Source: Bugula neritina
Lineage: Eukaryota > Animalia > Bryozoa
Direction: 5' to 3'
Length of the DNA: 64,000 nt
Assembly: GCA_964035545.1 (NCBI GenBank)
Contig: OZ037770.1
Location: 14,746,642 to 14,810,641 of the forward strand
The notes below the pieces were generated by a model that was not told the origin of the DNA, ran no database searches, and saw nothing but the letters and a program-made list of their open reading frames with translations. Of this stretch, positions 3,592 to 56,954 are shown in pieces (position 1 is the first letter of the stretch; every line of letters starts with the position of its first letter). The position numbers and the translations under genes are program-made.

Positions 3592-6006
3592 CAATGTGGT
3601 GATTTCTTTAATTGATGCATATATACAACAGCCCGCTCCATGGCAGATTGTGCGATACAATGTAGCCTTCACAGTGATGAATGCCAAGCAGGCATATTTG
3701 AGAGTTCCCACAAAGTTTGCACACTGTTAGAGAAAACTCTAAGTGAAGTTAAGGGTGCAGTAGCCAGCGGAACCATCTACTTTGAAGACTTCTTTTCTAT
3801 ACCTGGTAAGTCAATTCTAATTAATCAGTCTACATTATTTTATATAATGTTAATTTATTATGTTCTTACAAATATGTTTGAGTTAAAACTTTAACTACAG
3901 CAATCACATATTATAATAATAGGCAATGTTACCTATATTATGAAAAGCCTTTTATTAGCATTGATGATGATAAAAAATTGCTTTACATTTTGTAGATAAT
4001 TTTGTAAATAAGACTTTCACTGATGTTCTTGAATTTCAAAGTATGAAAACATACTCATACTGGCCTCTCTGCCTTGCTGCCTGTACAGCTGATAGTTTCT
4101 GTGCTGCGGCATCGTTTGACACAAACACACGAGCTTGTTACTTTTCTGTGGAGTCAAAAGTGTTGGTCTACTCGGAACCTAGTGATATTGGCAGACTGTG
4201 TTTTGTGAAGAAAGAGTATTTAAGCCAGCTCATGGTTTCTAACATTTCAACCAAACTAGCACGAGGTTAGCTTAAAACTCTCGTACCTAATTGAAAAATA
4301 TTTGCCCTCACTGGGAATCGAACCCGAGACCTCTGGCTTACAAGCAAGTGTGCTAACTATTACACCACAGGAACCACTGGGTAAACTCAACACTACATCC
4401 CACCCAGTTCTCTGAACTTCACTGGCCTCTTTACTGCTCTTTCAGTATTCAGGCTCAGTGTAGGGCCACACGACGCGTTTTATGTGAGCGTGACGTGCTA
4501 AAAATTCCATTAGAATACACGCTAGTGACCTGCCACACACAGTGCATGTGTTGCGAGTGCAAAAAATTATTAGCCAATGATGTTAGCGTTAAACTTTACT
4601 GCTAGCCTACAGATGTTTGTTTTTGAACTACGTCATCGGATTTGGATATTATAAAAGCGGAAATGCAAACTATATAAAACTGTTTTAACTCAGCTCGCTA
4701 GAAGTTAAATCATAAATTAAGATAAGAAAATGTGCTCGTTAATTATTACATGGTAATAAGCCAATTAGATCAAGCGTGTTGCACAAGCGTGTCGCACTTC
4801 TCGCTCAGCATGTTAGACGCTTTAAAATCCGCACCCAATGTCCAATTTTTGGGCTAAATGGGATTTCTCGCACGTCACACTCGTAAGACGCGTTGTGTGG
4901 CCCTACACTAAAAGCTGATATAACTTGCAAAATAGTTGTCCCTACTAGGAATTGCACCCGAGTCCTTTGGCTTGCAAGCAAGTGTGCTACCATTACACCA
5001 TGGAAGCCACTGGGTAAACTCGACACTACAGTAGTTTGTATATTCTATATTCAAATGGTCTTCAGTGTTCAGTGCTATAGTTAATAGTTAAGTAATTTTA
5101 TCTAGCTATAAATAGTGAAACATCTATAACAAAGTTTTGCTTCATCAGCTGTTGTACGTTTCCAGAACTTGTTCTGACAGAATACAAGTTTTATATTTTG
5201 TTTAAATTCTCAAGAAAATTAGGTCATTATTGTCGTCTTTGCGTGAAATAGTATTTAAACTTTCAATCTCTTTTCTTAAAGATGAAGCAACAACTAAATT
5301 AGTTTAGAGATGCAACACCTGCTGCAAAATATTTGCCCCCACAGGGATTCGAACCACAGGCGCGCAAGCTAATTACACCACAGGGGCTGCTGGGTTAACT
5401 CAACATTACACCTGAATTAGCTTTTGTTGTAAAAATGCTCTAAGTTAATTTGATGATTATTTTGTGCAGGAAAGCACATATCCATGTCTACTCAACATGG
5501 CCACACCTTCTCTCCGTATGATGCTATAGATGGAATCTATCTCCCCTCTCAACACCATGTAAATGAAGGCTTCAGCTTAGCTCTTACCCTGCGACAGCTG
5601 TCTCCATGGATTCAGGTAGATATGGAAAGCAGCCATCTTGTGTATGGTGTCAAGATTTGGTGGCGTTCCGAGAATAACCGTCCAAGTGAGTCGATGGTTT
5701 TGATTGTCACGCATTCTAACAAAAGCAGTAAATATTTATGTGTGCAAATTTTAAATCTAAAATAATTTTTAAACAGACGAGTATTTGAAACTGACTCATA
5801 CCAGAGTGACAGTTAACGAAATTGATGATAACTCATCAGAAGGTCAAATCTGCACCGACCTTTCGAGACCACCGTCGTCTAGCATCTTCTTTGTGACATG
5901 CCAGACTAGAATAAATGGAAGCTTTGTCAGAATAACAGGTGTTGAAATAAATGATAAACTTAAAATCTACGAGCTTGAAATTCATGGACTCGAGTTTAAA
6001 GATTAG
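3162..6006 (+). CDS. Secreted protein with two PAN/apple-like domains and a C-terminal F-type lectin (fucolectin/F5-8C-like) domain. Exons 3162-3309, 3632-3805, 3996-4265, 5470-5685, 5777-6006
   Basis: Hydrophobic leader [20 protein letters not shown]. Two PAN cysteine patterns (CAIQC..C....C; CLAAC..C....C..CF). Then [12 protein letters not shown]...AIDG...PWIQVDM...VKIWWR...C...C...GSFVRI...IYELEIHG, typical of F-type lectin domains. All four introns are phase 1. Confidence 0.8.
3497..3588. repeat. (TA)n microsatellite
   Basis: Pure TA run; source of the spurious IYIYIY ORFs. Confidence 0.95.
4302..4397 (-). mobile_element. tRNA-derived short interspersed repeat, copy 1
   Basis: Reverse complement reads TGTAGTGTTGAGTTTACCCAGT followed by a tRNA-like body with A box (TGGTGTAATAG) and B box (GGTTCGATTCC). 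Homologous to the copies at 4936, 5333, 11130 and 29145. Confidence 0.8.
4457..4909. mobile_element. MITE-like non-autonomous DNA transposon with ~50-bp terminal inverted repeats
   Basis: Left end AGTGTAGGGCCACACGACGCGTTTTATGTGAGCGTGACGTGCTAAAAATTCCATT matches the reverse complement of the right end, AGTGTAGGGCCACACAACGCGTCTTACGAGTGTGACGTGCGAGAAATCCCATT. Interior has no recognisable coding content. Confidence 0.8.
4936..5030 (-). mobile_element. tRNA-derived short interspersed repeat, copy 2
   Basis: Same leader and tRNA-like body as 4302-4397. Confidence 0.8.
5333..5410 (-). mobile_element. tRNA-derived short interspersed repeat, copy 3 (internally deleted)
   Basis: Leader (+ strand CTGGGTTAACTCAACATTACA) and B box GGTTCGAATCC are present; the anticodon arm is deleted. 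Confidence 0.7.
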
Positions 6007-21017: not shown

Positions 21018-24000
21018 TCAGACTATGTATTTGTTCCCTCCAACCATCACATTCGGCATGCTACCGTTACTAAACTTTACATCGGCTCGACGCTGCTCTT
21101 CGTCATCCAAGGAAGTTCGGGGGCGCGGCACAGGGGCCCTACCTGAAGTCGGCTTTTGTTGAGCGTAGTGGTTGTTATGGTGATACAAGAAATCTATATC
21201 GTGTGGAGACAACTTCTTAGTGTCGGGGGTTCCTGGAAGTGGTAGAGGCTGTTCGTAGCCTGTAAGTAGAGAAATTGTGTAATTTGAATAGTTGCGTAAT
21301 ATATTTATTTTATATTTATTTTATTTGAGTAATATACTTATTATGTTTATTATAGCTGAGCAATATATATTGATTTTACATAATTAGTGAGACACCAAAG
21401 CAAACATTAAATAGGAACATGATGCAACCTCTAAATTTCATTGCTAATTTACACTTTGAAAGACATAGACATATATACAGTGTATATCTAATGAACAGCG
21501 TGGAATACATGCTTACTATCAGGCAGGGAATCCTTGTCCACGTATTGTACGTTCACATCGCCATTAATGTATCTCTCATCAGCATGGTAGTTCTCGGGGA
21601 TTAACCTGGTCAAACTCCGAGCGTACGAGTATATAAACTCTACTGTAACACAATATATTACAATATTGATATTACGTAATTTATAGTACAATATTGATAT
21701 TACATAATTTATAGTCCAACAATTATAATGCTTGTAGTACAGTAGTTATATCACAATATCTGTATTACAATATTCATATTACAGTATGCATACTATAATA
21801 TTTATAGTACAATAGTTATATTACAATATTCATATTACAAAATCTGTATCACAATGTTTACATACAATGTACTTCATTGAAGTAGTTCACTGAGTTTAAA
21901 TAACAGGAATTATATTAGGAAAGTTTATAACTCAACAAAGAATTTCCTAGAAAAAAATATAAAGATTCATTTATAGTAAAATTAAAATATAAATTATTAT
22001 TTTCGTCAAAAATTGTAACTTTAGTATTTCTTGGCATCAGTTTTAAACCTTTCAACAGACGCCCTGACTGTAGTCTACTGCTAAATTTAAGGTAGCTACT
22101 ACAAACACTTTGCTTTTAGAGGGGCCTACGCTGCATACTATTTATTATTCATGCGTTATTCTTGTGTGTATGATGTGCTATTTATTTGTTTGTTATTCTA
22201 GAAGTTATTCTAGCTCGTACCGTCATTCGGGTTTTCCCCAAACTTGTACTCTCTTGCACTCAGCAAACAGCCTTCCAGCGTCTCCCTTATCTCAGAAAAG
22301 TTTGGTCGTTTCATTGGGTCAACATTCCAACACCTTTCTATATACCCGAACCTGAAATAAAGTTTTATATATAAAATTGGTAGTAAATAAACTCCTAATG
22401 CTAATATAAAAAGAATAATTTAAATATATTAGTAATATATAATACTAATAAGACATGATGTAATATGAATGAGTAAACAGGAAATGAGTAAACAGGAAGT
22501 AAAGAACATGAAATGAAGAACTTACAAGGCAGGTTCAGTGTTGACAGGTCTGCACAGTCTATAACCTTGCTGTAAGTGCTGTATAATCTCACTGTTGGCT
22601 ATTCCAGGGTATGGGTGACTACCACGAGTCAATAACTCCCACATCAGCACACCGAATGACCACTGCAACATGGAATAACATATGTAGGTGTATAAAATAT
22701 GTGTATTGAAAGCATATATAGGAGAAAAGTATTAATAATCATAATGCTGTCATAATAATATTATAATACTTATACTTATAACATATTACAGTATCATTTG
22801 GTCAAATGATAATATTTTTATTACTATAAAGTATAGTCACATTATAAATATTCAACAGAATAGTTTGCATTATTACTAACCACTTCAGTGGCAGAGTTGT
22901 AGAAGCCACTTGTGAGACACTCTAAGGCCATCCATTTGACAGGGCGGGGCTTACTCGTGTCATTCTCCCGGTAATAGCTGCCTTCATACACGTCTCTACT
23001 CAGCCCAAAGTCAGCGATCTTCACAAGAAATGTGTCATCAACTCTGCAAGCAAATATGGCAGCATTAGTAGTAACTAGGTCATGGTACATTAGCAGTAAC
23101 TAGGTCATGGTACATTAGCAGTAACTAGGTCATGGTACATTAGTAGTAACTAGGTCATGGTACATTAGTAGTAATTAGGTCATGGTACATTAGCAGTAAT
23201 TAGGTCATGGCAGCATTAGTAGTAACTAGGTCATGATACATCAGCACTACCTATTTTACGTACAGCAGATGTGAACAATTATTGTGAGCTATGATAATGG
23301 GTCAAATTGTATAAGTATTTAAAGTAATATTCATTTTTGAGCAATTACTTATGTATACTTTTAAACAAGAGAAGTTCATTATTCAAAAGAAAAATGCTGG
23401 AAAATAAAATTGCAAAAATACGAACTATATTTTAAATTATTGCACTTTAACTGCTTTTTCCATGCATTTTATTTTGCATAGTGATGATAATTAAATACAG
23501 AATGAGAAAAAAAAAGTAAATGAGAAAAAGTCACTCACAGACAATTTCTAACAGCTAGATCTCTATGCAGACACTTGTTATCAGTCAAGTATTCCATTCC
23601 CTTTGCCACTTGCATCCCGAAATGAACGAGATCTCCGTTTGTGAACAACTGAAAAAGGAAAAAAAAACTAATGATTATCAGAGCTTAAAAGGCAAGAAAG
23701 TGTAATCTAAGAGTTAGAGAGGCAAGAAAGTGTAATCTGAGTCATAACTAAAGAGGCAAGAAGGTGCAATCTAAGTCATATCAAATTAAAGTCGCCTACC
23801 ATTTCTGGTTTCCTGAGAAGAGAACCCAGATCCCCGAGCGCCATGTACGGCAGAACAACATTAGGTCTGTCTCCGATTCTCCAGCAGACACCCAGCGTCG
23901 CCAGGATGTTGGCGTGACTGAAGTCTTTCATGAAAATAGCTTCTTCCAGAAACTCTTGCAGCTGTTTCATATCGATATCTGCCGTTTCTACAAAGAAATC

Positions 24001-27000
24001 AAATTAATGTTACATGTAATGGCATTACATAGAGTTAGAACATTGCATTAGCATGTTGTATTATCTATTTAGAGTTTTCTTTTAGTTAAAATAATGACTA
24101 TATGCTTGACTTTAGCTTGTCGTCCATCTGATGCTTTTTCTTAGAACAACGTTTTCGTTATTGCTTTTGGAAGTGACCGAAAGAGGGCTTAACCAATAAA
24201 ACATTCTTACAATGACAATACCTATATTGAAGCACATTATATCACACATTTTTTATGCTTAGCACCATAGTAGCCTATATTGTAATCATACATCTATGGT
24301 AGAATTAATTTCAAGCTTTCCTGCAATTTCCTTTTTAATGAGCTAATTATCATCATAATTTACCTGCAATAGTAAAAGTTAGACTATGACTGGCCATTTA
24401 TAGAAATTTTTGTGACTTCTTGCAACCTTGTTTTTGCAAAAATTTGCTACATGCTGACTGATAAACTATTGTGCAAAAGCATCTTCACAAGATTAAATTA
24501 AATAGAAATACAAACCTTTTAGTGTTTTAACTGCAACCGTTTTGAGCACATTTCCTTTAAGTTGAAGTTGTCCAAGATAAACTTTACCAAAGTTACCTGC
24601 AACAATACACAGGGTGAAATTTATATACTATTTTGTGGTGTTAATATATTCTACCCACATAATTCAGAATATTTGATCTGTGCCATTTATAAAATAAAAC
24701 ATTAAAATTTATTTCAAACTTATACAACAGCTAAACTTGAAAAGCAACAACTGTAAAAAAAATTGAAAGATTAAAATAATTTGTCACGAGCAAATATTAG
24801 AGAATAGAAATAATAATTTAAAGCAATAATTCAATATATTATAATTTGTAGTTTATTATCATCATTCGACGAATGCATTCATATACATACATACAGCACT
24901 GGCGCACAAACACACATCCAGTTATGAAGAAAAAATAAATCTGCAATCATGAATTGACAAAATTATTACATTACTAACAAGTCATAACCATTATGCATCT
25001 TATTATAAGAAAAGAGATTAATTTGTAGCATATTTTTTGGATTAGCACATTGCAAATTTCATAGTTACACATCTAAATAAGAGCAGTAAACATCACCAAC
25101 CTCTACCAATCGGCTCGGATTTAGGATTGAAGCTAAGTTTGGAAGAATCAATGTAGATGTCATTGAGCTTTATTCTTAGTTCACACGGCAAGATCATCTC
25201 CAGACCTCCATTTCCATCATCTGTCAGAAGAAATATATTTTAAAAATATAATAACATAATATTATTATATAGTGTAATATAGCATAATAATTATATATTA
25301 ATATATAGCACAATGTAGCGCAGTATAGAAAACTATAATATTATAGCGCGGTATAGCGTAATATAATATTATAAAGGAATTTAATGATATTTAGTGTAAT
25401 AAGATGAAAAATAATATTGCCATATAGCATGAAAATGTAGAGTAATATAATACAGCATGATGGTACTATAATATTAATACAGCATTATGTAGAATAACAA
25501 ATTATTAAAATATACCATAACATGATATAATACATTACATACGTATCATTATGCTGTATATATATGGTATAACATGACACAATATGATAACATAACATAA
25601 TATATAATACAGGATAATATAAGAATATAGTATGATATGAAACAATAGTAAAGAGTCTTGAAGTTAAGATGGAAATATATTCTGTGTTTTTTATTATTTT
25701 TTAAAATAGACAACTTGATTATTATTTTTATCAGGAGAGAAAACTGACCAGTTTGAAAAAACACAGTTTGTACAACCTACAACATTTCAGAGCCATTACC
25801 AAAAGTTATGACGCTTGTCCAAAAATTTGCTCTTCATGAAAGCTTAAAAAAATTACATGCAATAATTTGTTCCAAAACTTTAAAAGCCAAATTACCTTCA
25901 TATCTAATTGGTAGTTGTGAAATCGGCGACCTTGGTTGCTTTCTCTTGTACAGGAGGTAAGCAAGAAGAGCTATGATGATGACAACAGCAGTCACTACCA
26001 CTGGCACTACTATATCAACTAACCCTGAAATCATATTCATTGGATATATGCATTCCATTTCGTTATATATAACGTGCATTAGACGAGCCAAATACAAAAC
26101 ATTGACTAATGTAAAATTAATACACAACAATACTTACAAATTAACAAATTTTAATTAAAATTACAATTCAACAAGAAGTCATAATAAAATACTATTATAA
26201 AATAAAAAAATGTGCCCAATTAAGGAGGTTGTAGTAAGTTTAGTAACTGGTGGAACTGAGGCTAAGTGCTAGACTGGTTTCCCATCAATTATGCAAGACT
26301 CAGCAAGAGTTGGAATTTAGATTTCATATCTATTTTAACATCATTAATACAATTCACACACAAATTAGTCTCCAATGAGTGCATACCTGTGGAAGTGGGA
26401 GGATCTTTAACAGGGCCAGCTGTGTGGCTGATGAAGAATTTAACTTCACCAATGGTGTAGTTTTTACCAGCAACCGAAACCTGTAAACATAATATTATAT
26501 AAATACATATACCACCGCTGCATTCATAAGAGCAATGCATGAAAATGAGGGTTTTTCAAGGGTGCAAAAAAAACTAAGACTAAATAACAAGCAATTACAA
26601 CTATCTTGCATCATAGAAAAGAGTTTGGGCTTAAAACTAACCAACAATAAAAAAATAGCATTTCAAACTCTGTAATTTCAACAAAATAAAAACTTTAACT
26701 TTTATCAGCTTGCAGGCATATATGAAAATAACTTTGTTTGCGACATCTTGATAGAAACTACTGTTACACCAGAAAAGGCAAAATTCTTCAAATACCGGAG
26801 TAAAAGTTATATTTCAGTTGCAGCTATAGCGATTACCTGTAAGTCAGCTATAAGGATTACCTGTAAGTCAGCATTGAGGATTAACTGTAAATCAGCAATG
26901 AGAATTACCTGTAAATCAGCTAGAAGGTTCGGAGTGTGGGCAGGTATGCTGATAGAGTACAGGGGAGGTTCACATACAACAGTAGCTTGGCTAATTCTTG

Positions 27001-30000
27001 TGACATCACAAAGCAGCTGAGCTCCACTTTCAACCAACTTCAGATACACTGTATAGTCGGATATCATCAAGGAAGTGTCCAAGTTAGATCCAGTTAGACC
27101 TATGGTTGTCTGGTTCCAAAGGTCAAACTTCTACAGATTGTTCAATATTAGTGTGAATTGAAAATTCAAAAATAATTTCAAAAGGACTTTTATGTAACTG
27201 AGTTAACTGCAAAGTGTTTAGACAGAATCAATTATCAACATAAATTTTTTTATGATTAGAACAGAAAAGTTGAGTTTGATAAATTAAATATTATAGAGTG
27301 AACCAGCCAAATGGCTTTAGTTAAAAATTATTTTTCAAATTGTAACTTTTAGAATTTTTCTGCCGTAACCTACTATAATTTGTTTGAAAGTGTCAAAAAT
27401 TGGCTCGGTTTCGGAAATAGTGAAGTCAAACTGACTCCCAATGTGAGCTTTTCCATCTAACAGCAGTGTGGCAGTCAAAGTGAGAAACTCAACTTCAGTG
27501 GTTACGCTTCTCTTAGCTGAAAGGTAAGATTACAATGTCAGCTGCAAAGCCAGTATTCAACATTTCAGAATCAATCATTGTACTTAAACTTAAAAGTTCA
27601 TAAATGATTTAAATGTGTTTATATGTCTGTCTACTGAAAATAAAATTATAAAACTTTCATTACTATTATTTTAGACTTTTGCCAATATTTTAAAAAAGCA
27701 AAAATAAAGCTTTGTAGCCAAAATTTTGGTGTATCTCAATATAGTAAGTTCCATTACAAAAATTTTTTGTGCAAAATTCGTCCATTAAACCTTTTGCTAA
27801 AACTCAACATGAAAGCATCATGTAAGCACGCAACGTTACCTTTTCCATCAAAGAACTCAGATAAATCTGGAGTCGTGCAAGACAGTGTTTTTCCAAATGT
27901 TCCAAGCTTGCAATTCTAAAATAAAGCACCATTTCATAAAGATCTATATAAAGTTACACCGAGCTTTAAAGAAGAAGTAAATAAATCCAAAACTGTGTAA
28001 TATAATTGCTAACCAGATTATAAATGAAAAGCATCATCAAATGTTCACTTATTAAAATGTTTCGAAGTCAGATTGCCAATTCTGGCTGCGTACATACCGG
28101 CAGCTCTAACTAGGGTTATAATAACTAAACTGAGTATCGTACCGTGACAGCTCTACCTAGGGTTATAATAACTAAACTGAGTATCGTACCGTGACAGCTC
28201 TACCTAGGGTTATAATAACTAAACTGAGTATCGTACCGTGACAGCTCTAACTAGGGTTATAATAACTAAACTGAGTATCGTACTGTTACAGCTCTAACTA
28301 GGGTTATAATAACTAAACTGAGTATCGTACTGTTACAGCTCTAACTAGGGTTATAATAACTAAACTGAGTATCGTACTGTTACAGCTCTAACTAGGGTTA
28401 TAATAACTAAACTGAGTATCGTACTGTTACAGCTCTAACTAGGGTTATAATAACTAAACTGAGTATCGTACCGTGACAGCTCTAACGCTAGTTGAGACGC
28501 TGCTGAACATCAGAGTGTGGTTGTACACTGAGTCAAAGTTATCTCCTCTGAAGAATATTTCAAGACCTCCTCTATACAAAAGTATGATAATTATCTAACT
28601 CGAACTTTTTTAAAAATTTTGTATTTTTATATTGTAAACAGGTTCAGCAGAATTTTTTTCAGAATTATAATTTAAAAAGTTATTAAAATATTATGAGAAA
28701 GTTTACAAATTATTACTTAAATATAAACTTGTGCAATCTTGGTATTTTGATGCATGCGGGTAGCACAAGAAAGAAATTGTATGGTAGCACACACTAGCAC
28801 ATGGCAACACATGCCAGCAGAATATGCTACTATATACATGCTCACAAATGCTAGTAAGATTGGCATGAGGTGTACCCTGGTTAGATTTCTTGTTTACCAT
28901 GACAAAACCAGTGTGTTGTAATACATTCCAAACCTAAGCAATCAGCATGTAATGACATACATGTTGCAGATCAACAGTTATTGTTTTGTATATCTAGGAA
29001 CTTAGATATATTTTTAGATAACATAAAAATATATTTTATGCAGTCAATCCTACTGCATTGCCATTAGTGTGTAGTTCATTCTGTAGCATATTTAACTTAC
29101 AACGTAAAAAAACAATATATAATTAAGAAAATGCACACTTTCATTGTAGTGTTGAGTTTACCTAATAGCCTCTGTGGTGTAAGGATTAGTGCGCCTGCTT
29201 GCAAGCCGGAGGTCCCGGGTTCGAATCCCGGCGGAGGCAAAATTTTCATATTTATTATTTGCAATAATAATTCAATCAATTACTTAGCAATTTTGACTAC
29301 CAAGAAATTAGACTAAAAAGTACCATTACTTAGCAATCATACTAAGTACCTGGTATTTGCACTAAATACCTGGAAATCGCACTGTTGCGATTGATAGAAC
29401 GGACTACTGGGTCTGGTAAATACTCGTAGCTTTTACTACTTGAATTTCCAAGCAGTACTTCCACATCAACTGCTCCAAGTCCACTTTGAGATTCAGGCAT
29501 GTGAAAAGTAATGGTCTGGGTTGATTCCCTAAAAGTAAAATTATGTCATTATTTATATACCAAACAAAATTATCATTTTCCTCTCTTTATAAATCTTATA
29601 TAACATTGTTTTATAAACACTTGAAAAGAAATTACCGAGTAAATTCTAAAACTTGTTCTTGGGCAACAAATATTTGAGGGTCCTCAGTAAATATTCCAGT
29701 CAGAGTTATGGTGGTACCTCCTGATCGTTGCCCCTTCTTAGGTTCTAGTTTCAATAATGCGGCTTCCTGCAAGGTAGAACAATATTCACGATAAATAGTT
29801 TTTCCTTTATAAATTGAAGCATTATCACATTGAAATTCTCAACTCATTACAAATCTCGCATCAGTGTCGAGACTTTGAGTGAGTGAGTAAGTGAGTGAGT
29901 GAGTGAGTGAGTGAGTGAGTGGGTGAGTAAGTAAGTGAATAAGTGAGTGAGTGAGTGAGTGAGTGAGTGAGTGAGTGAGTGAGTGAGTGAGTGAGTGAGT

Positions 30001-33000
30001 GAGTGAGTGAGTGAGTGAGTGAGTGAGTGAGTGAGTGAGTGAGTGAGTGAGTACTCACTTTGCAAACAGGCATAGGTTTATCCCAAACACCGTAAACTGT
30101 TCCATTATCAAACAGAGCTCGTACACACATCACAGTATCATAGCTGCTGTTGACACCGTAGCCGTTTTTACATCTGAACTTTATAGAGTCTTTGTTTATG
30201 TATTCATTCTTGTTTGGAGTGAAACTCAAGACATTATTAAGATCCTTAGCTTCAGGAGGGTAACACTTGGGTTGAGCTGTGAAGATAAAAAAGAATAAAA
30301 AACTGTTTTAAGAGTTATCTTCCACATATAAATCATGTCACAGCATGTCCAAGAAGAATACCGAGAAAAAGATGCTAATTTGTAAAAACAGCTCACAATT
30401 AAATATATTATCTGTTTGTCACAAAATTATCAATATAAATTTATTACAGACTATTTATAGCATAGGCTGGATTGTTAACATAATTATATTACAAGAAGTT
30501 GAGATTACATTACAAAACTTTAAATTTGATCTAGTAGTAAAAATAGTTCTCCTTTAATAAGAATAACATTTTATTATCATGCTTGATTTACTCAGCAAGC
30601 TAAATACAGTATTTCCCAAAAATAAGCTTTTGCCACCTATTCAACAAAACAATTCTTTTTAAATAAACGAATCGTCAATAAAACTAAACTATGTTGAGTG
30701 TTGTACTAACAATAAGTGAGTGTTAGAATGTGCCCAGCCCTGTTGGTTTCCGGCCCAGAAGAGTCTCCAATGTATATTACCCCGTCAATAACCTTGGCGG
30801 TGAGCGGAGAATTTACTTGGCACTTGTCCAACCCACCAGTTCTGAATTTAGGGTTGTTGGAATACTGACCTATAATTGGGAAGAGAATACAGGAAATGAT
30901 GCGTATATGTTGTTTTCCCATGACTTATTGCAGCACTTTTTATCACGCTTTGTTTTTTTCAGTATTAAACAAATTGTGAAATTCCATTTGCCATATAGTT
31001 TTGAAAGATATTTCTTGTAATTCAGTTGACCACTGACAATACAAAGCTTCAGTTCTAAGTTATTATAAAGTATAGCTAGAGTTGCTTACCCTCGCATATA
31101 GTAGAGACATCATTATCTTCAAGATTGACTATTCTCAAGGCATTCTTATAGTCACACACAAGTAATACTTGATCCTGTATTAACCAAACCATCCCAGTTG
31201 GTAGTTCTACAGAGATACAAATGCTCTCATTGGCTAAAGGGTTGTAAAAGTTAAATACCAATGCTCTCATTGGCTAAAGGGTTGTAAAAGTTAAATGCAA
31301 ATGCTCTCATTGGCTAAAGGGTTATAAAAGTTAAATACAAATGCTCTGTAGAGTTTCTGAGAGTTTCTTTTATGTCGTAAAAACCATCTGGTAAACTTTT
31401 AAATATATATAGTTAGTTGAATGGCAGGAAAACTAAATATACAAGAATAAATAATAAATAAAATAAATTTAAAAGATATAGAAATGGCAAAATTAAATTA
31501 AAGCAAAACAAATAATAAAAAATCTAGAACATGATTGAAAAATTATAGGAATAAAATTATAAAAAGAATAAATATAATATTGATATGATATTGTCATTGA
31601 TAATAATATTGAATATTCAATAAATAAATTATTGAATAAGTGTTGAATAATAATATACTGATGACTACAACTTACTGCCAAAGCGAGCTCTTAGCAATGG
31701 ACCATCAGCCACCTTTCTTGGAGTGCTACTGGGTATGTATTCGGTGCCTGCTACAAGTACCTTGGTCCAGTTGGCAGATCTTGTGTCAAACTTTGACACT
31801 CCTCCAGCATGGTTGACATACATGTACCTGTTCTGGCTGTCCATTAGAATGGTGTAGGCACCAGTGAAGAATTCCAGATCTTTATACATCAGGCTTATCA
31901 TATCTAAACATTGGTAGTAATAATAATCACCAAGTAAACTCCTTCATTATAGACAGTATTTAATTACATAATTATTTTTTCAGCTGATAGGTTTATTTAA
32001 AAAACTTTGTCTGGTGAAAGGTTTGGTTAGTTTGGTAGCTATGCTACTTGAGCTCAATAAATATATAATGAAATAGCTTTCTAATTACTCATGTAACACA
32101 TACTACATTTCCTTATATATGCCTTGTTATTTCAATTGCTGTGCTTAACTAAATACTTCTAGGCATGCAACAAAATGATTCAACAAATCAGTTTATAACC
32201 ACCATTTATTACAGCCCTGCCCCTTCTCATGCAAAAAAGAGGCAGCCTTACTAACTTTTATACACACAAACAATATAACAAAGTTTCTTACAAGCAAGCT
32301 ATGATTTATACTTGAAAAACATTTAGCCATAACTTTAGCGTTCCTTCAACTCATCTTGAAACGCATATTGCCTTTTGTCAGAAGAGTGCATCTAGGCCAA
32401 GACGATATAGTTAGACCACTGACCTGAAGTCAAGTTGTGCTTGAGTATGACTTTATCGAGTAAGTAGTAAAAGATATTCTCTTCTGGAATGTGAAGTAAC
32501 TTCAGAGGATGTGTAAGTTTGGCGTCTGCCGGGCTCACCGGATCAGAAACATATCCTTGTCTGCCACAATCACCCACAAATGTGGACACTTGTGGATACA
32601 AGCCACTGCGACGTTCAACTTTGCGGATGCAGTGATTGTTGAGATCGGCGATTATGATGTCGGAACCGTTGTTCATCTGCACGAGGTCTTGGACGATGTT
32701 GAAATAAGCGAGATACCCTGGCCCATCTCTAAATGCCGTTTCATTTTCTCTCCCTGTAGAAAAAATGTTTGAAATAACATACTGGGCCATAAGAAATTTA
32801 ATAAGAATTTCATAAATAGGTACATGAACATTACTGAACTTTTATATTATAAATACAAAAAGAATGAAGAAGATTGCACATATCAGTTGTTATCAGATCG
32901 ATTGAACTGAGCAATTATAAGCATTTTCATTTTGAAGTTCTTTGCCACCATCATATTTGGCATTGATTAACCGTCAATTTTCCTGAATGGTAAAATGTTA

Positions 33001-35562
33001 CATTTGACTCAGCACGCATATCTTTAGTACTTTAGTCTCTTGTAAATTACTGGATAGCTTCCAATGATGCATATTATCTTACTTTAGTAAAAATAACATA
33101 ATTATAGTCGTATATTATTATTACTTTTTGATTTCTTTGCCAAAGTAAGACAAGATAAGCACTCAATTTACTGCCAGCATATTTTTGTTCATTCATGTTA
33201 TATTGTCATCTTTCTAGCATTTTCTAATTGTTAAAACAAATTTTGGAATTATCTTATCCAAACCAATTTTTTGTCACTATGTAATGAGTTCTATATAAAG
33301 TTTATATAGAAATCTTATATATAAATGTACAACAGCTGTTTAGGATGTACCTTGTAACTTTTAAAAAAACACACTCAGGTAGTGTGAGATACAAAAATGA
33401 ATAGACTAAAATGCATTGTGTTAGATACCACTATCCTTGTTATAGTGAAATTTCACTAAATTTTTACTAAAATTTTAATAAAATTCCAAACTGTTTGAAA
33501 CATTTTAATTTTGAAAGATTACGCAACATTCTTGCTATTTCTTTTAACTCTGTGAAATAAATTGTGACTTATCTTATTTTAAACTAAAAATTATTATTTT
33601 TAAATAGGTTTAAAATGAGTTGAATTTGTTCAGCACATAGAAAACATGTATTTGGAGTTGTATTCATAGGCTATATATTAATGAGCTTTTAAAAGCGCAT
33701 GATTATCTAGCATGATTATCTAGCTATACGTTGATGGCCAAATTGCTATGTGCTTGAAACTGTATGCTTATAGTGATAAAAATAAACATTTAAATAATAT
33801 TTTTATATTTTCATCATGTCTTCAGATTATAACATTCTTTATGCGTCATATGATTAGTAAAATTCTTGCCAACAGTTCACTAGAAACAATATGTGAGTGA
33901 AAAAATGAAATAAATTATTGCATGCTAAACTAGGAAACTATTTTGGCACTAGTTGGCAGGTACTCTATGCAGAAGTGTGATGCAAGCTAAGATTTCCTTT
34001 AGCACATTTCAATTATACGTACTCATGAAATATTTGTTATCATTTTGTAAGAGGAATTACAATTAGGAAATTCACAAGGTATTGCTCAAAGTGCAACATG
34101 TTGATGTAAATTATAAGATGTATACAACACAATATTATCAGAATTAAATTGCATAAGACTATTGTTTACTTCTTGACACTTTAAAATTTTTTTTTTTTAA
34201 GTCTGCTTAATAATAAATCTCAATTTGAAATGAATAGAATTAACTTTGCAAATTAAACTAAAAGAAATAATAATCTAATACTCAAAGTTATTTGTTTGTG
34301 TTAAAAAATTTCAAACTCTTTAAGCAATGAAATAAAGGAAATGGGCAACATTTCTTCCTGCTCCGACCTCAAACATTTAGAGCAATATTTATGTTAGTCG
34401 GTCATCAGCACAAGCTTTTAGCATTAAAATAGTGAATCTACATGCATGAAATAGTTTGAGATTGCTTGCCGGCAATTATTGTAATTTTTACCTGCGAGTA
34501 TATCCACTCTAAGACCAGGAGATATGTGGGCTAGACTGTGCTGGTTTCCAACGAGAAATCCACCACTTTCCAGCTGATCTGGTTCGATATCCTCCACAGT
34601 TCTGAGGTTGTAGTTATCTAGCTTTAGCTCTTGTAATTCACCAAAAGATACAAGAGGCTTGGCACTGAAAACGTTCCAACGATTTCGTTATACAGATGTA
34701 GAATCTGGGCTTAACATAACTTAACTTGATTTCTCATTCAATATTAAATTATTCACAATTATTTTGGCTGTCAGCTAAATACAGCTTCAGAGTAGCATTG
34801 GTTTTGCAATAACATTTTTGCATAAGTGTGTCTTGAATTAATTTAGGATAAAGGCTCAGTTGTTGATGAAAGCCTCTATAGAACTGTTACAAATTATTAT
34901 CAGTGATTTTCAAGAAGTTAAATGACTGTTAACCAAACAGCTATAAGTCTAAAAGCTATGAATAAGCTTTGAATAGGTTATGAGTAAATGACACAATTAT
35001 AAAGAGCTATCTTCATGGAAACATAATGGAATAGGACTGACTATGTCTTTATACAGATCACTGCAGTTATTAATTTGCAATTAAACTGCATGTTGTAGAA
35101 TTTGAGCTATTAATGACAGGTCCATACTAGTAATACAGCTGTTCTCTTTGAAAGATGTAGGTTTCCCAATATTTCTAGCAAATATTTTCAATTCGAAAAG
35201 TTGTTTGTAAAATAAAGCAATCGTACCCAGCCTAAACAACAATAACTAGCAAAAATCTGCACCAATGCCCTTAACATGTACTTGCTAAAAAGTAAAGCTT
35301 TTTATTACAATTATTTACTAAAGCAGACAAACTACCTGTTTCAAAAACTTACAGAAAGTACTATGGAACATTTTCAATTTAACCCAATAGGAGTTACGAG
35401 TATGGGTACAACTATGATTTCTCATTAGCATGATGCACATTATACATTCACAGTGAAAGGGTGATAATACAATCCTAAAATACTTTACCTCTGGGTGCTC
35501 TGACATAGAGTGAAGTTGATGAAGACGCAGTATATAAAAATAGCCTTGCACAATTTCGCCAT
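21018..35562 (-). CDS. Receptor tyrosine kinase: signal peptide, NHL-repeat beta-propeller, Sushi/CCP, 3x IPT/TIG, TM, Met/RON-like kinase. 24 exons: 35562-35489, 34664-34492, 32753-32424, 31903-31676, 31206-31090, 30869-30711, 30276-30059, 29766-29636, 29528-29370, 28571-28472, 27915-27840, 27516-27374, 27130-26909, 26480-26387, 26024-25896, 25220-25101, 24596-24516, 23987-23800, 23648-23539, 23043-22881, 22662-22526, 22351-22221, 21642-21517, 21259-21018
   Basis: Leader [23 protein letters not shown]-like [14 protein letters not shown]...[14 protein letters not shown]...[20 protein letters not shown]: CYPP...FRCKNGY...C...[11 protein letters not shown]: [54 protein letters not shown]: [21 protein letters not shown]. 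Kinase: [80 protein letters not shown]. Confidence 0.9.
23063..23246. repeat. 25-bp tandem minisatellite (~7 copies) next to an RTK acceptor site
   Basis: Unit CATTAGYAGTAACTAGGTCATGGTA. Confidence 0.9.
26830..26921. repeat. 24-bp tandem repeat (~4 copies) duplicating an RTK splice donor
   Basis: Minus-strand unit is approximately GCTGAYTTACAG|GTAATCCTYAWW and translates in frame as ADLQVILI. Confidence 0.88.
28101..28486. repeat. 47-bp tandem minisatellite (~8 copies) spanning an RTK exon/intron donor junction
   Basis: Unit AGCTCTAACTAGGGTTATAATAACTAAACTGAGTATCGTACCGTGAC; the last unit overlaps the end of exon 28571-28472. Confidence 0.92.
29145..29245 (+). mobile_element. tRNA-derived short interspersed repeat, best-preserved copy (tRNA-like body 29168-29239)
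   Basis: Leader TGTAGTGTTGAGTTTACCTAATA; acceptor stem GCCTCTG/CGGAGGC; T arm CCGGG TTCGAAT CCCGG. D and anticodon arms are imperfect (TTGCAA loop). Followed by TTTT. Confidence 0.8.
29877..30052. repeat. (GAGT)n tetranucleotide microsatellite
   Basis: Long near-perfect run beside the donor of the Sushi exon; source of the THSL ORFs. Confidence 0.95.
31215..31347. repeat. 40-bp tandem repeat (~3.3 copies) next to an RTK acceptor site
   Basis: Unit ATACAAATGCTCTCATTGGCTAAAGGGTTGTAAAAGTTAA. Confidence 0.9.
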
Positions 35563-46663: not shown

Positions 46664-50372
<3,709 letters not shown>

Positions 50373-51326: not shown

Positions 51327-52695
51327 TTAGATTTGTGACTTCAGATAGCAGTCTCTGATGCTACTAGTCTGGCCTGGTGATGCGTTGCTAAGCAACTGGC
51401 ATTTGTTAGGTGGACTCAGATAAATCCACAGCACTTCTGCTGTTTCACACAGAGTAAAGCACATTTTTCTGTGCTGATAGACAGATGCCCTTCTTTAAAC
51501 AGGAAGTCCCGATAACCAGAGAATTCATCACACGTTTTGACGATGACGAATCGGTAGTGGCCAGTTGACTCTGAGGTTTCTACACAGCCAACATCTGGTT
51601 TGTTTTCTTTACTATTCTCCGGAATCACTGGACCTGGGACTGTGGTCTCTTCCACTGTAATGTCACATGATGTATTGCAGCAATGTATTGAATATAGTAG
51701 AGAATTAAAACCTAGGGAGCAGCTGTGATCTAGGGGTTAGAGCGTTTGTCTAGTAAGCACAAAGCCATAGGTTCTAGCCTCCAAAAAGGCCATTGGTGAT
51801 GTTAGGAACAGCATCCAGTCATAATTGCTCCTGTGCCACATATGAATAAGCCTTTAGTTCAATTTAGCAAAAACCCCTTTCCATCAGGGAGTCTCGCAGG
51901 GATGGCGACTATAAACTAGCTTGAGAGAGTTTAGCATAGAGAGCTAAAGCCTGTTAAGAACTATATAATTCTATTATTAGAGAAAAATAATGTATAATGA
52001 GAAGTAGATATGTCACTTACCGTTGCTATCGGAGCAGAGAAAAGGTTTGGCACAGAAGAAGGACAACCCATTGTCCTGGTGAAAGTCTATCTCTCCTTTC
52101 TCACTGATAATAAGTCTCCACTGAGATCTTGTGTCACTATAGCTATGATCATGATCACTCAGCCCAGGGTGGTACGACTCCGATATTAAAGCATTGTTGT
52201 CTAGCCAACGGGCATGCTCGAACTCTCCTGATATGCCAATATGCACGGCCCTACATTTGCCTGTTTGAAAAAGCTCTTTATGATTTAGCAACTGGCAATA
52301 AAATAATATTTTCATTTCCATTTTGTTAATATCTTATTTTCATTATTTCTCTCTGAGAAAGACAAAATAAGTGATGCCTCATTAAATCAAATAACTACCA
52401 AAGATAATTTATTAGATTAGGATATATGCTGCAAAATTCTTAACTTACTGCATGCTTTTTTTATCCAGTCAAGTAAGAACGAAAGTGTTGAAGTTGATCG
52501 AATGGAAGCTAGCACAGCATTTCCTTTGGAGCAAGCAGTAGAAGCTGTAGCGAAGTACTCTCTTTCGTCGTGGTACTCATAACAGGTGCTGTTATGTTCC
52601 ACCCATCCTTCCAAGCAGCATGTCTTTGGAGAACCATGGCTCAAATCATTCAAAAAAAGAATGCCATAAAATATATTCAAATATAAAAATTTCAT
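51327..52695 (-). CDS. Secreted C-type-lectin-like + PAN/apple protein, with an apparent 1-bp frameshift near 51420. Exons 52695-52449, 52260-52021, 51654-51327
   Basis: Leader MKFLYLNIFYGILFL; CLEGWVEHNSTCYEY...FATASTACSKGNAVLASI; VHIGI...RWLD...FFC; EKCALLCVKQQKCCGF. The shifted frame continues LSPPNKCQLL...DCYLK, matching the paralogue at 53885. Confidence 0.8.
51715..51920 (+). mobile_element. Degenerate tRNA-headed SINE (second family)
   Basis: A-box-like TGATCTAGGGGTTAGAGCG and B-box-like GGTTCTAGCC, followed by a GC-richer body inside an AT-rich intron. Single copy in this window. Confidence 0.5.
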
Positions 52696-53824
52696 TCTTT
52701 TCAACTTTTTTAAGCAATGCTAAGAGTTTCTTCGTCCTATACAAGGTTTACACTGACAATATGAAAAATATTAATAAATGTCATCTATACTTGGACTAGA
52801 GAAAACAGATGTTTAATTACAGTTTTCAGTGTTGAAGTGTTATCAGAAAAGCTTTGATGAACCTGATTAAAAGCATTGCATTAGGGTTGGGCTACAAACA
52901 GTGATGATGTGATTGTAAATATATAATTAAAGTTTTATAACTATGATGAACAGTTTAAAGCTTGTTGATTGATTTTGAAGTTTTACTCAAAAGAAACTTT
53001 TAATAACGCTTTTGATGACTTCAAAATATTATGTTTTTAGCCGAGAGATTGAAACTGATTGAAATGAATTCAGGTTAGGACACGTCAGTAGAAATCAAAA
53101 CTATTGAAATAATGATTATTGTTATAAAGAACAGTTCTGATTGAGTAAGAGTTCTATTTGGGACGTGAAAATATTTGATGTAAAGGAACATTTATATAGT
53201 GCGGTACCTGTTTGGTTATATCTACAGTGAGTTTCCCAGTAACAGCAGAATTTCAAGAGTGAATTATTTAATATATATATTCAGATGCATGTTTTAAACA
53301 CATAAAGCATATACTGTGTTTTGAAGTTGTGTATTATCAAGCTTTGTATAAAATTAAGAAAAAGTTCTTTATTCTAAAGTCAATAGACAATAAAAATCTG
53401 GGACAGAGGCTGGTGTTATAACTCTTAAAATTTAGGAAAAAAACTTTAAAAAATTTGAAATATGAACTATAGTTTGTTGAATGAAGCATAAAATTTAGAA
53501 AGTGTGATTTGTTAGTATAAATATATTACTGCATCATATAACAGAAATGAAGGTGGAGAGGAAATTTGACACAGTAAACTGCAGCAGCTTATAATATATG
53601 GTGCGGTTGCATTTTCTAAAACGTAAATGGTCAGTTTATCAATATAACGATATATTACAAACTCTCATTATAGTATTATAATTATTTCATCATCGGCAAA
53701 ATATATAGGATATTAAAATATTAATTGTTTTTCTAACAATCATTAGATTTACTATTTGTCGTTTAATAAGTGAGAAGGAAATTGTGTTTTCACTGCTTTA
53801 TACTATACTTATAGTTCAGCTAAA

Positions 53825-53880
53825 CAGCAGCAGTAGCAGTAGCAGCAGTAACAGCAGCAGCAGCGGCAGTAGCAGAAGCA
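53825..53880. repeat. Imperfect (CAG)n immediately 5' of the ATG
   Basis: CAGCAGCAGTAGCAG... run. Confidence 0.8.
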
Positions 53881-53884
53881 TAAA

Positions 53885-56032
<2,148 letters not shown>

Positions 56033-56954
56033 TATTTCTGTGATTTGAATGTTTGGTGCGATATTCTGCAAAGGAAGTGCATAGTGATTTGATCAAACGA
56101 CTCCATTAATTAGCCAAGAAGCCGGAAATATTTCATTATATGTTTGAAATAAATACTTATAATTCATGTTTATCTAAATTATATAATAAATGTAGTAAAT
56201 TTATTTTATAGTTGATATTTTTCAGGTTTCACAGGCTCTTTCCAAGCTTTTGTTATGGTTTATAAACTGTTGTATTGTTTCGTAACATTTTGTTTAGAGT
56301 TCTTTTATTATAACATTATAATATATATAGTGTATGCAATCAATATTGTGTTGTATATGATTTGAAAAGTAAATTTATTTGCATTATAAATTGCTATATA
56401 TACTCATGAAAAAATGCATTATTATAGGAACATTTTGCAGCTTTAGTTTTTTAACAATATATTATTTTCTTTGAAGCAGTTTCAGGAATACATAGTTAGC
56501 TATTAAATATCATAGCTCGCAATGTATACAAAATGTTTTAAAGACTGTGAAATACCGCAGTTCAATTCAATAAACAAAGTAATATTTGATAATTTCGGGT
56601 TGTGAAACTTTAACCAGATCTACATTTTTGAGATGGTAATATATGTATTTTGACAAAATTAACTCAACTCACCATAACAATAAATAGCAATGCAAAATTT
56701 ATTTCTCTTGGATGGTACCAAGGTATTATATGCTTTCATAGTTGGAACCAAATAAGTTGAATGTTTCCAATAAAACTTACATAATTAAAATAATGAAATA
56801 AACCTGAAAGAAAATGTTTCTTTCAGTCAACTCTGAATTTTATCATTAGCCCTTTAAGATACAGCTGACTGCTGCAGAATGATATATGAAAAGATAAAAA
56901 TTTATTTATGTTATAGTAAATTTTATACACGTATACACTATACATATGGTGTCC

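Follow-up and report, generated by a model that had tools for sequence, protein, structure and literature searches.

A gene on contig OZ037770.1 of the bryozoan Bugula neritina (assembly GCA_964035545.1) raises the question of whether the stalk and kinase of a Met/RON-like receptor tyrosine kinase (RTK) can be carried under an unrelated propeller, and, if so, what was exchanged and at which point of the gene. The stretch analysed, hereafter the window, is the 64,000 nucleotides from 14,746,642 to 14,810,641, and the gene, which lies on its minus strand, was rebuilt from the splice signals of the genomic DNA. The resulting model has 24 exons with AG/GT ends throughout, which join into 3651 nt and an open frame of 1216 amino acids (aa) whose sole stop is the last codon, at 21018, bearing out the 24 phase-consistent exons of an earlier sequence-only reading of this DNA. 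The joined model was used for the frame check and motif numbering, and searches were made exon by exon or with the database proteins KAF6021773.1 and KAF6032475.1 as proxies. The gene encodes a type I RTK composed of a signal peptide, an NHL propeller, a Sushi domain, three IPT domains, a transmembrane (TM) helix, a kinase and a tail (coordinates are listed in the table below). Beyond the head, discussed next, the parts named in the sequence-only reading were all recovered: a hydrophobic leader read as a signal peptide, one Sushi (CCP) domain in exon 7 (Pfam E 2e-7, above cut-off), three IPT domains (three TIG stretches on the ortholog and paralog database proteins), a TM hydropathy peak at about aa 743-765, leaving an ectodomain of ~740 aa, and a Pfam tyrosine kinase above cut-off in exons 18-21. 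Taken as a whole, the locus is most likely one expressed gene, derived from a Met-family RTK by a swap of its head and duplicated later.

The head was proposed to be of NHL type instead of Sema, and this holds. Pfam searches find NHL weakly in exon 3 (E 0.013) and above cut-off (20.9 vs 20 bits) on a paralog head 84% identical to that of the window gene. Matches to exon 3 among representative proteins are dominated by long multi-repeat NHL proteins, while a plain sequence search of the PDB with the head returns NHLRC2 and SOQ1. AlphaFold predicts six four-stranded blades for KAF6032475.1 (residues ~23-336 of a model of residues 1-410; predicted template-modelling score 0.75), and in structure this model comes closest to the NHL propellers of SOQ1 and NHLRC2 (Z 26-27, E ~1e-11), with teneurin NHL domains next. 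The alignment supplied to AlphaFold was built from NHL proteins and so biased the model to the NHL fold, which counts against it; however, the ESM Atlas model, made without that alignment, matches NHL clusters only (template-modelling score 0.65-0.72). Sema is absent from the top 50 folds in both structural match lists for the modelled head, and no Sema match was found on the exons, on the ortholog and paralog proteins or at the locus. Neither was a PSI match found at the window locus, where Sushi stands in its place. By fold prediction, the head is a six-bladed NHL propeller and not a Sema domain.

Below the head, exon-wise Pfam searches find weak TIG domains in exons 8 and 13, and the stalk aligns to MET residues 659-870 (E 8e-5), which correspond to IPT2-4. 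Exon 8 therefore begins at about MET residue 656, the start of IPT2, and Sema, PSI and IPT1 are thus all missing. The suggestion that one propeller had been swapped for another stands insofar as Sema-PSI is replaced by NHL-Sushi, but has to be widened, since IPT1 was replaced too, with the joint at MET ~656. By alignment, exon starts map to MET residues ~656, ~1113 and ~1212, and the sizes and phases of the kinase exons (81/188/110/163/137) and stalk exons (131/159/100/76+143) appear to parallel those of exons 16-20 and 8-11 of human MET. Exon shuffling, the mechanism originally put forward, fits the foreign head, but the Sushi exon is of phase 1-0, so the event looks less like the insertion of a symmetrical exon than like the attachment of a 5' block at a phase-0 intron that was already old. 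We propose that a block comprising signal peptide, NHL propeller and Sushi domain took the place of the Sema-PSI-IPT1 head of a Met-family receptor, the exchange falling at the phase-0 intron that precedes IPT2, and that the chimera was duplicated afterwards. Within the stalk, a basic site, KAKR (aa 588-591, across exons 11 and 12), may be cut by a proprotein convertase. A structure model of the stalk was discarded (predicted local distance difference test score 31).

The kinase retains its catalytic landmarks, with the G-loop (823), the beta3 Lys (VAVK, 845), the helix C Glu, HRD (942) and DFG (962) all intact and activation-loop tyrosines at Y970/Y974/Y975. The motifs cited as hallmarks of Met/RON are likewise all present (MKDF at 871, LPYMxxGDL at 897, YxxxYY at 970-975 and PVKWMALE at 985); the YxxxYY pattern is common to TAM and insulin-receptor kinases also. 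Exon 18 is nearest to MET (50.6 bits, against 43-47 for MER, 40 for AXL and 38 for RON), and of the claimed Met/RON kinship a special closeness to RON is not borne out; exons 19 and 21 do not discriminate between kinases. Best matches and motifs together suggest a Met affinity for the kinase. The tail carries YxN (1119), YxxP (1138) and YxxQ (1168) motifs. MET has a tandem docking site (Y1349/Y1356) and a juxtamembrane DYR Cbl site; no MET-like tandem C-terminal docking pair (YVxV) was found in the tail of the window gene, and no DYR site in its exons 15-16.

Several observations pull the other way. The stalk scores better with plexin-A2 residues 924-1075 (E 7e-8) than with MET, exon 20 is a tie among MET, MER and DDR1, the top scores for exon 21 are those of EGFR, AXL and LCK, and the subdomain IX Asp (DVWSFG) is Glu1004 here, as it is in both kinase-bearing paralogs described below. 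The chassis could come from a Met-LP receptor, which has a full plexin ectodomain, or from a TAM/Ryk-side kinase rather than from Met proper, an origin that we consider unlikely but that draws on the plexin-A2 score, on exons 20-21 not singling out MET and on the report of Met-LP in Lophotrochozoa (PMC6374515). Against it, exon 18 favours MET, and the exon sizes of stalk and kinase appear to parallel those of human MET. For TAM and Ryk in particular, the RPV ahead of KWMALE presumably recalls Ryk and speaks for such a source, whereas we know of no IPT stalk in either group, which speaks against it.

A sequencing run, X1, which we guess to be RNA and which has RNA-like contigs of a sibling B. 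neritina lineage, was compared with exons 1-7. Its depth is confined to exons, joints occur at introns 2, 3, 4, 5 and 6, a loose end coincides with the end of exon 1, and its variants agree with the ortholog at 36 of 38 sites, many of them unique to the ortholog. The joints together with the matching variants indicate that leader, propeller and Sushi domain are spliced together in this gene, which is expressed at least through exon 7. The ortholog is represented by KAF6021773.1, a protein named PLXNB1 by NCBI that joins exons 5-16 (81-100% identity to the window exons); its contig has exons 1-16 in order and ends just past exon 16, and this collinearity identifies it as the ortholog in the sibling lineage, from a second B. 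neritina assembly. DNA identity between the two genes is ~82% overall. The ratio of nonsynonymous to synonymous substitution rates (dN/dS) is 0.02 in the TM and juxtamembrane exons, while the propeller stands at 0.14, Sushi at 0.16 and the IPTs at 0.23; the gene is under purifying selection.

The joint between exons 7 and 8 is where two neighbouring genes might be suspected instead of one, the first for a secreted NHL-Sushi protein and the second for an IPT-TM-kinase with no head. All propeller exon junctions are of phase 1, read-through of intron 7 meets a stop beyond a 4-base tandem repeat (29876-30052), and the window gene's own exon 7-8 joint is not among the RNA joints seen: the RNA comparison spans exons 1-7 only, and the one RNA contig that crosses from exon 7 to exon 8 has the letters of a kinase-less paralog, which tells against a single gene. 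We nevertheless regard two genes as highly improbable. Intron 7 is 292 bp long and its donor is strong, no leader is encoded in exon 8, the two kinase-bearing paralogs, ~40% identical in the head, keep the same linkage and phases, and NCBI models span the junction, as does the paralog's RNA. The NCBI model, the short intron with its strong donor and the paralogy point to a single gene with a predicted exon 7-8 joint.

Table. Parts of the NHL-Sushi-IPT-kinase gene, in window positions.
Feature	Position	Strand
Complete coding sequence of the type I receptor tyrosine kinase (24 exons, 1216 aa)	21018..35562	-
Exon 1: start codon plus hydrophobic leader (putative signal peptide)	35489..35562	-
Exon 2: NHL propeller, first blade	34492..34664	-
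Exon 3: NHL blades 2-3, clearest NHL repeat	32424..32753	-
Exon 4: NHL blades 3-4	31676..31903	-
Exon 5: NHL blade 5	31090..31206	-
Exon 6: NHL blade 6	30711..30869	-
Exon 7: Sushi/CCP, 4 Cys (365, 396, 411, 432), phase 1-0	30059..30276	-
Intron 7, phase 0: joint of new head and Met/plexin-type stalk	29767..30058	-
Exons 8-14: three IPT/TIG domains matching MET IPT2-4	26387..29766	-
Exon 15: transmembrane helix and basic stop-transfer residues	25896..26024	-
Exons 16-22: juxtamembrane segment and tyrosine kinase	22221..25220	-
Exons 23-24: C-terminal tail with tyrosine motifs, proline-rich stretches and hydrophobic C-terminal end	21018..21642	-

The window gene is one member of a family, which comprises three kinase-bearing genes of the intron-rich type, two kinase-less genes and one without IPTs. 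The two other kinase-bearing genes (C3 24.32-24.33 Mb, plus strand, and C3 6.25-6.26 Mb, minus strand) repeat the exon order NHL, Sushi, IPT, kinase, and their core kinase exons are mostly 55-80% identical to those of the window gene. Their intron phases agree with it wherever exons were tested, the phase 1-0 Sushi exon among them. The two kinase-less genes (C6 6.34-6.36 Mb and 5.73-5.75 Mb) match exons 1-15 and lose homology just past the TM exon, with no kinase found within ~18 kb; dN/dS between their ectodomains and that of the window gene is ~0.25-0.4. KAF6032475.1 (764 aa, a Sushi-domain protein according to NCBI) lacks a kinase, and its identity to exons 2-15 is 60-89%. The sixth gene (C6 14.629-14.634 Mb) combines NHL and Sushi with a TM-like exon and lacks IPTs. 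Over 356 bp, its Sushi exon and the adjoining sequence share 92% identity with window exon 7 and its flanks, whereas its NHL exons are just 51-64% identical, a disparity that points to recent exon-level exchange or conversion.

In the paralog at C3 6.2497-6.2498 Mb the activation-loop tyrosine pair is lost, while HRD and DFG are kept. This loss, the replacement of the subdomain IX Asp by Glu in all three kinases and the persistence of kinase-less copies could be taken to mean that the kinase is weak or catalytically impaired and signals as a scaffold or co-receptor for a retained Met. We find this improbable for the window gene, in which the G-loop, beta3 Lys, helix C Glu, HRD, DFG and YxxxYY are intact, the change from Asp to Glu is conservative, and the TM and juxtamembrane exons are the segment with dN/dS 0.02.

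The wider genome holds both possible relatives of the chassis and possible sources of heads, although the kinase loci on C4, C5 and at C3 23.6 Mb are known from match positions alone. At C4 9.481-9.488 Mb (minus strand), PSI, TIG, TIG and Met-like kinase exons stand in order on one strand within 7 kb; Sema was not detected there by the exon-wise scan, and the locus is probably a retained conventional Met or Met-LP. At C3 23.58-23.71 Mb there are at least 4 more Met-like kinases, each with one or two long single-frame NHL propellers upstream on the same strand. More than 80 NHL matches, mostly open frames of ~290-390 aa, are clustered on C2, C7 and C8, and this expansion is a plausible donor pool for heads. 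Kringles gave three isolated matches in the genome scan and no HGF-like kringle array, the count being a lower bound. A Sema match at C3 22.58 Mb was rejected as Met, as it reads as a secreted-type semaphorin. A semaphorin with Sema-PSI-Ig and no visible TM is encoded, for the most part by two long open frames, at L035 1726-5637 (plus strand).

NHL exon 3 also has homologs, bounded at the same exon limits and present as many paralogs, in marine metagenome contigs of ENA from another, low-GC animal; these contigs are too short to reveal domain linkage. A metagenome scan with KAF6021773.1 gave no match, and one with an exon 3 alignment gave weak partial NHL matches only. The many copies of the same NHL exon in another animal would suit a lophotrochozoan family of greater age, present without a name in existing domain-architecture databases, as would the fact that protein searches missed even 40% identical paralogs at full length, which means that the sensitivity of these searches was low. 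An older family is nonetheless rather doubtful, since no paper was found that describes the layout, and in NCBI the ortholog fragment goes under PLXNB1, while the paralog is labelled as a Sushi-domain protein. A literature search for NHL with receptor tyrosine kinases or with bryozoans found no description, most subscription journals lying outside the search. The NHL-Sushi-IPT-kinase layout is apparently undescribed; the sequence-only reading did not recognise it from the standard RTK classes.

The kinase-less paralogs offer a view of where the head may make contact. Differences between their heads and that of the window gene are concentrated in top-face loops (26-31%) relative to bottom loops (6-14%; p 0.048 to <0.001), although faster drift of the top loops, which are longer, may be the whole reason, and the three paralogs compared are not independent. 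A test for hypervariability of the head between the sibling lineages was negative (dN/dS 0.14; no enrichment in top loops, p 0.19), and with the head conserved in this way a stable partner fits better than an arms race. Extracellular NHL of teneurins serves cell-surface recognition. By our proposal, the top face of the propeller would bind a macromolecular partner, and the Sushi domain would act as a spacer that sits on the IPT stalk. The most likely partner, by a modest preference, is a protein that is secreted or displayed on cells; a glycan or the surface of a microbe is a distinctly less favoured candidate. Ligand binding would dimerise the receptor and lead to trans-phosphorylation of Y974/Y975 and then of the tail tyrosines, which would recruit adaptors of Grb2 (YxN), Crk/Nck (YxxP) and STAT (YxxQ) type. 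To judge from its sequence, then, the receptor probably works like Met, with a new ligand. Kinase-less copies could act as decoys or as co-receptors with altered specificity, tuning or diverting the signal. A more speculative extension, which we advance only tentatively, is that in bryozoans the Met stalk and kinase are a reusable chassis, with heads drawn from the pool of more than 80 NHL matches, signalling and kinase-less pairs, and ongoing exchange of modules, and that the system could serve recognition of colony self and non-self, symbionts or settlement surfaces instead of growth-factor sensing.

Other elements of the window were noted in passing. Intron 9 contains a tRNA-like element with a defective anticodon (29168-29239, plus strand), probably a short interspersed element or a tRNA pseudogene. 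Judged by motifs in its open reading frames, 46664-49909 (plus strand) is a cathepsin L-like cysteine protease gene. At 51400-56050 the sequence alone suggests a divergent pair of genes with C-type-lectin-like exons; the gene on the plus strand also contains an 18-bp Thr-rich repeat and, C-terminally, a PAN/apple-like module. Exons at 3640-5765 (plus strand), likewise judged from sequence only, resemble PAN/apple and F5/8 discoidin domains.

The persistence of stalk and kinase under an unrelated propeller indicates that the Met chassis is modular, and the window receptor permits a direct test of whether an IPT stalk activates its kinase regardless of the head. The genes also make up a defined and expressed receptor family in which the cell recognition of a colonial animal can be studied, and they illustrate how automatic annotation hides such a layout, the ortholog having been filed as PLXNB1.

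The NHL propellers of SOQ1, NHLRC2 and teneurins share the six-bladed fold of the window head (Z 21-27), but are not fused to kinases and are only 12-19% identical to it. With Met/RON receptors, as known from human MET and from annelid and mollusc Met (PMC6374515), the window gene has in common an IPT stalk, a single TM, the N-lobe motifs and YxxxYY. Met/RON receptors, however, begin with a seven-bladed Sema followed by PSI, where the window gene has neither and carries NHL and Sushi instead, and they have four IPTs where it has three, lacking IPT1. The basic processing site lies in the stalk of the window gene and in the head of Met/RON, and MET differs further by its DYR and tandem YVxV sites, both missing here, and by the subdomain IX Asp in place of Glu. 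By Sema, PSI and number of IPTs the window gene is not a Met, while by stalk and kinase it is Met-like.

A further comparison is with the Met-LP RTKs, lophotrochozoan receptors that, like the window gene, set a Met-like kinase on a plexin-type IPT stalk (PMC6374515). They keep a complete plexin ectodomain with Sema, in contrast to the ~740 aa here without Sema or PSI, and their layout shows that the Met-like chassis has recombined before. The survey that reported Met and Met-LP in annelids and molluscs found them via their Sema domains, and hence covers Sema-bearing forms only (PMC6374515). Venus kinase receptors and Hydra Sweet Tooth are likewise invertebrate RTKs in which an unrelated sensing module sits on a known kinase, and serve as a precedent for borrowed heads (PMC2680970). 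The former combine a Venus flytrap head with an insulin-receptor-like kinase and the latter has a C-type lectin head, and neither has been described with an IPT stalk or NHL. The surprise of the present architecture is therefore moderate, because invertebrate RTKs with odd heads such as these were already known.

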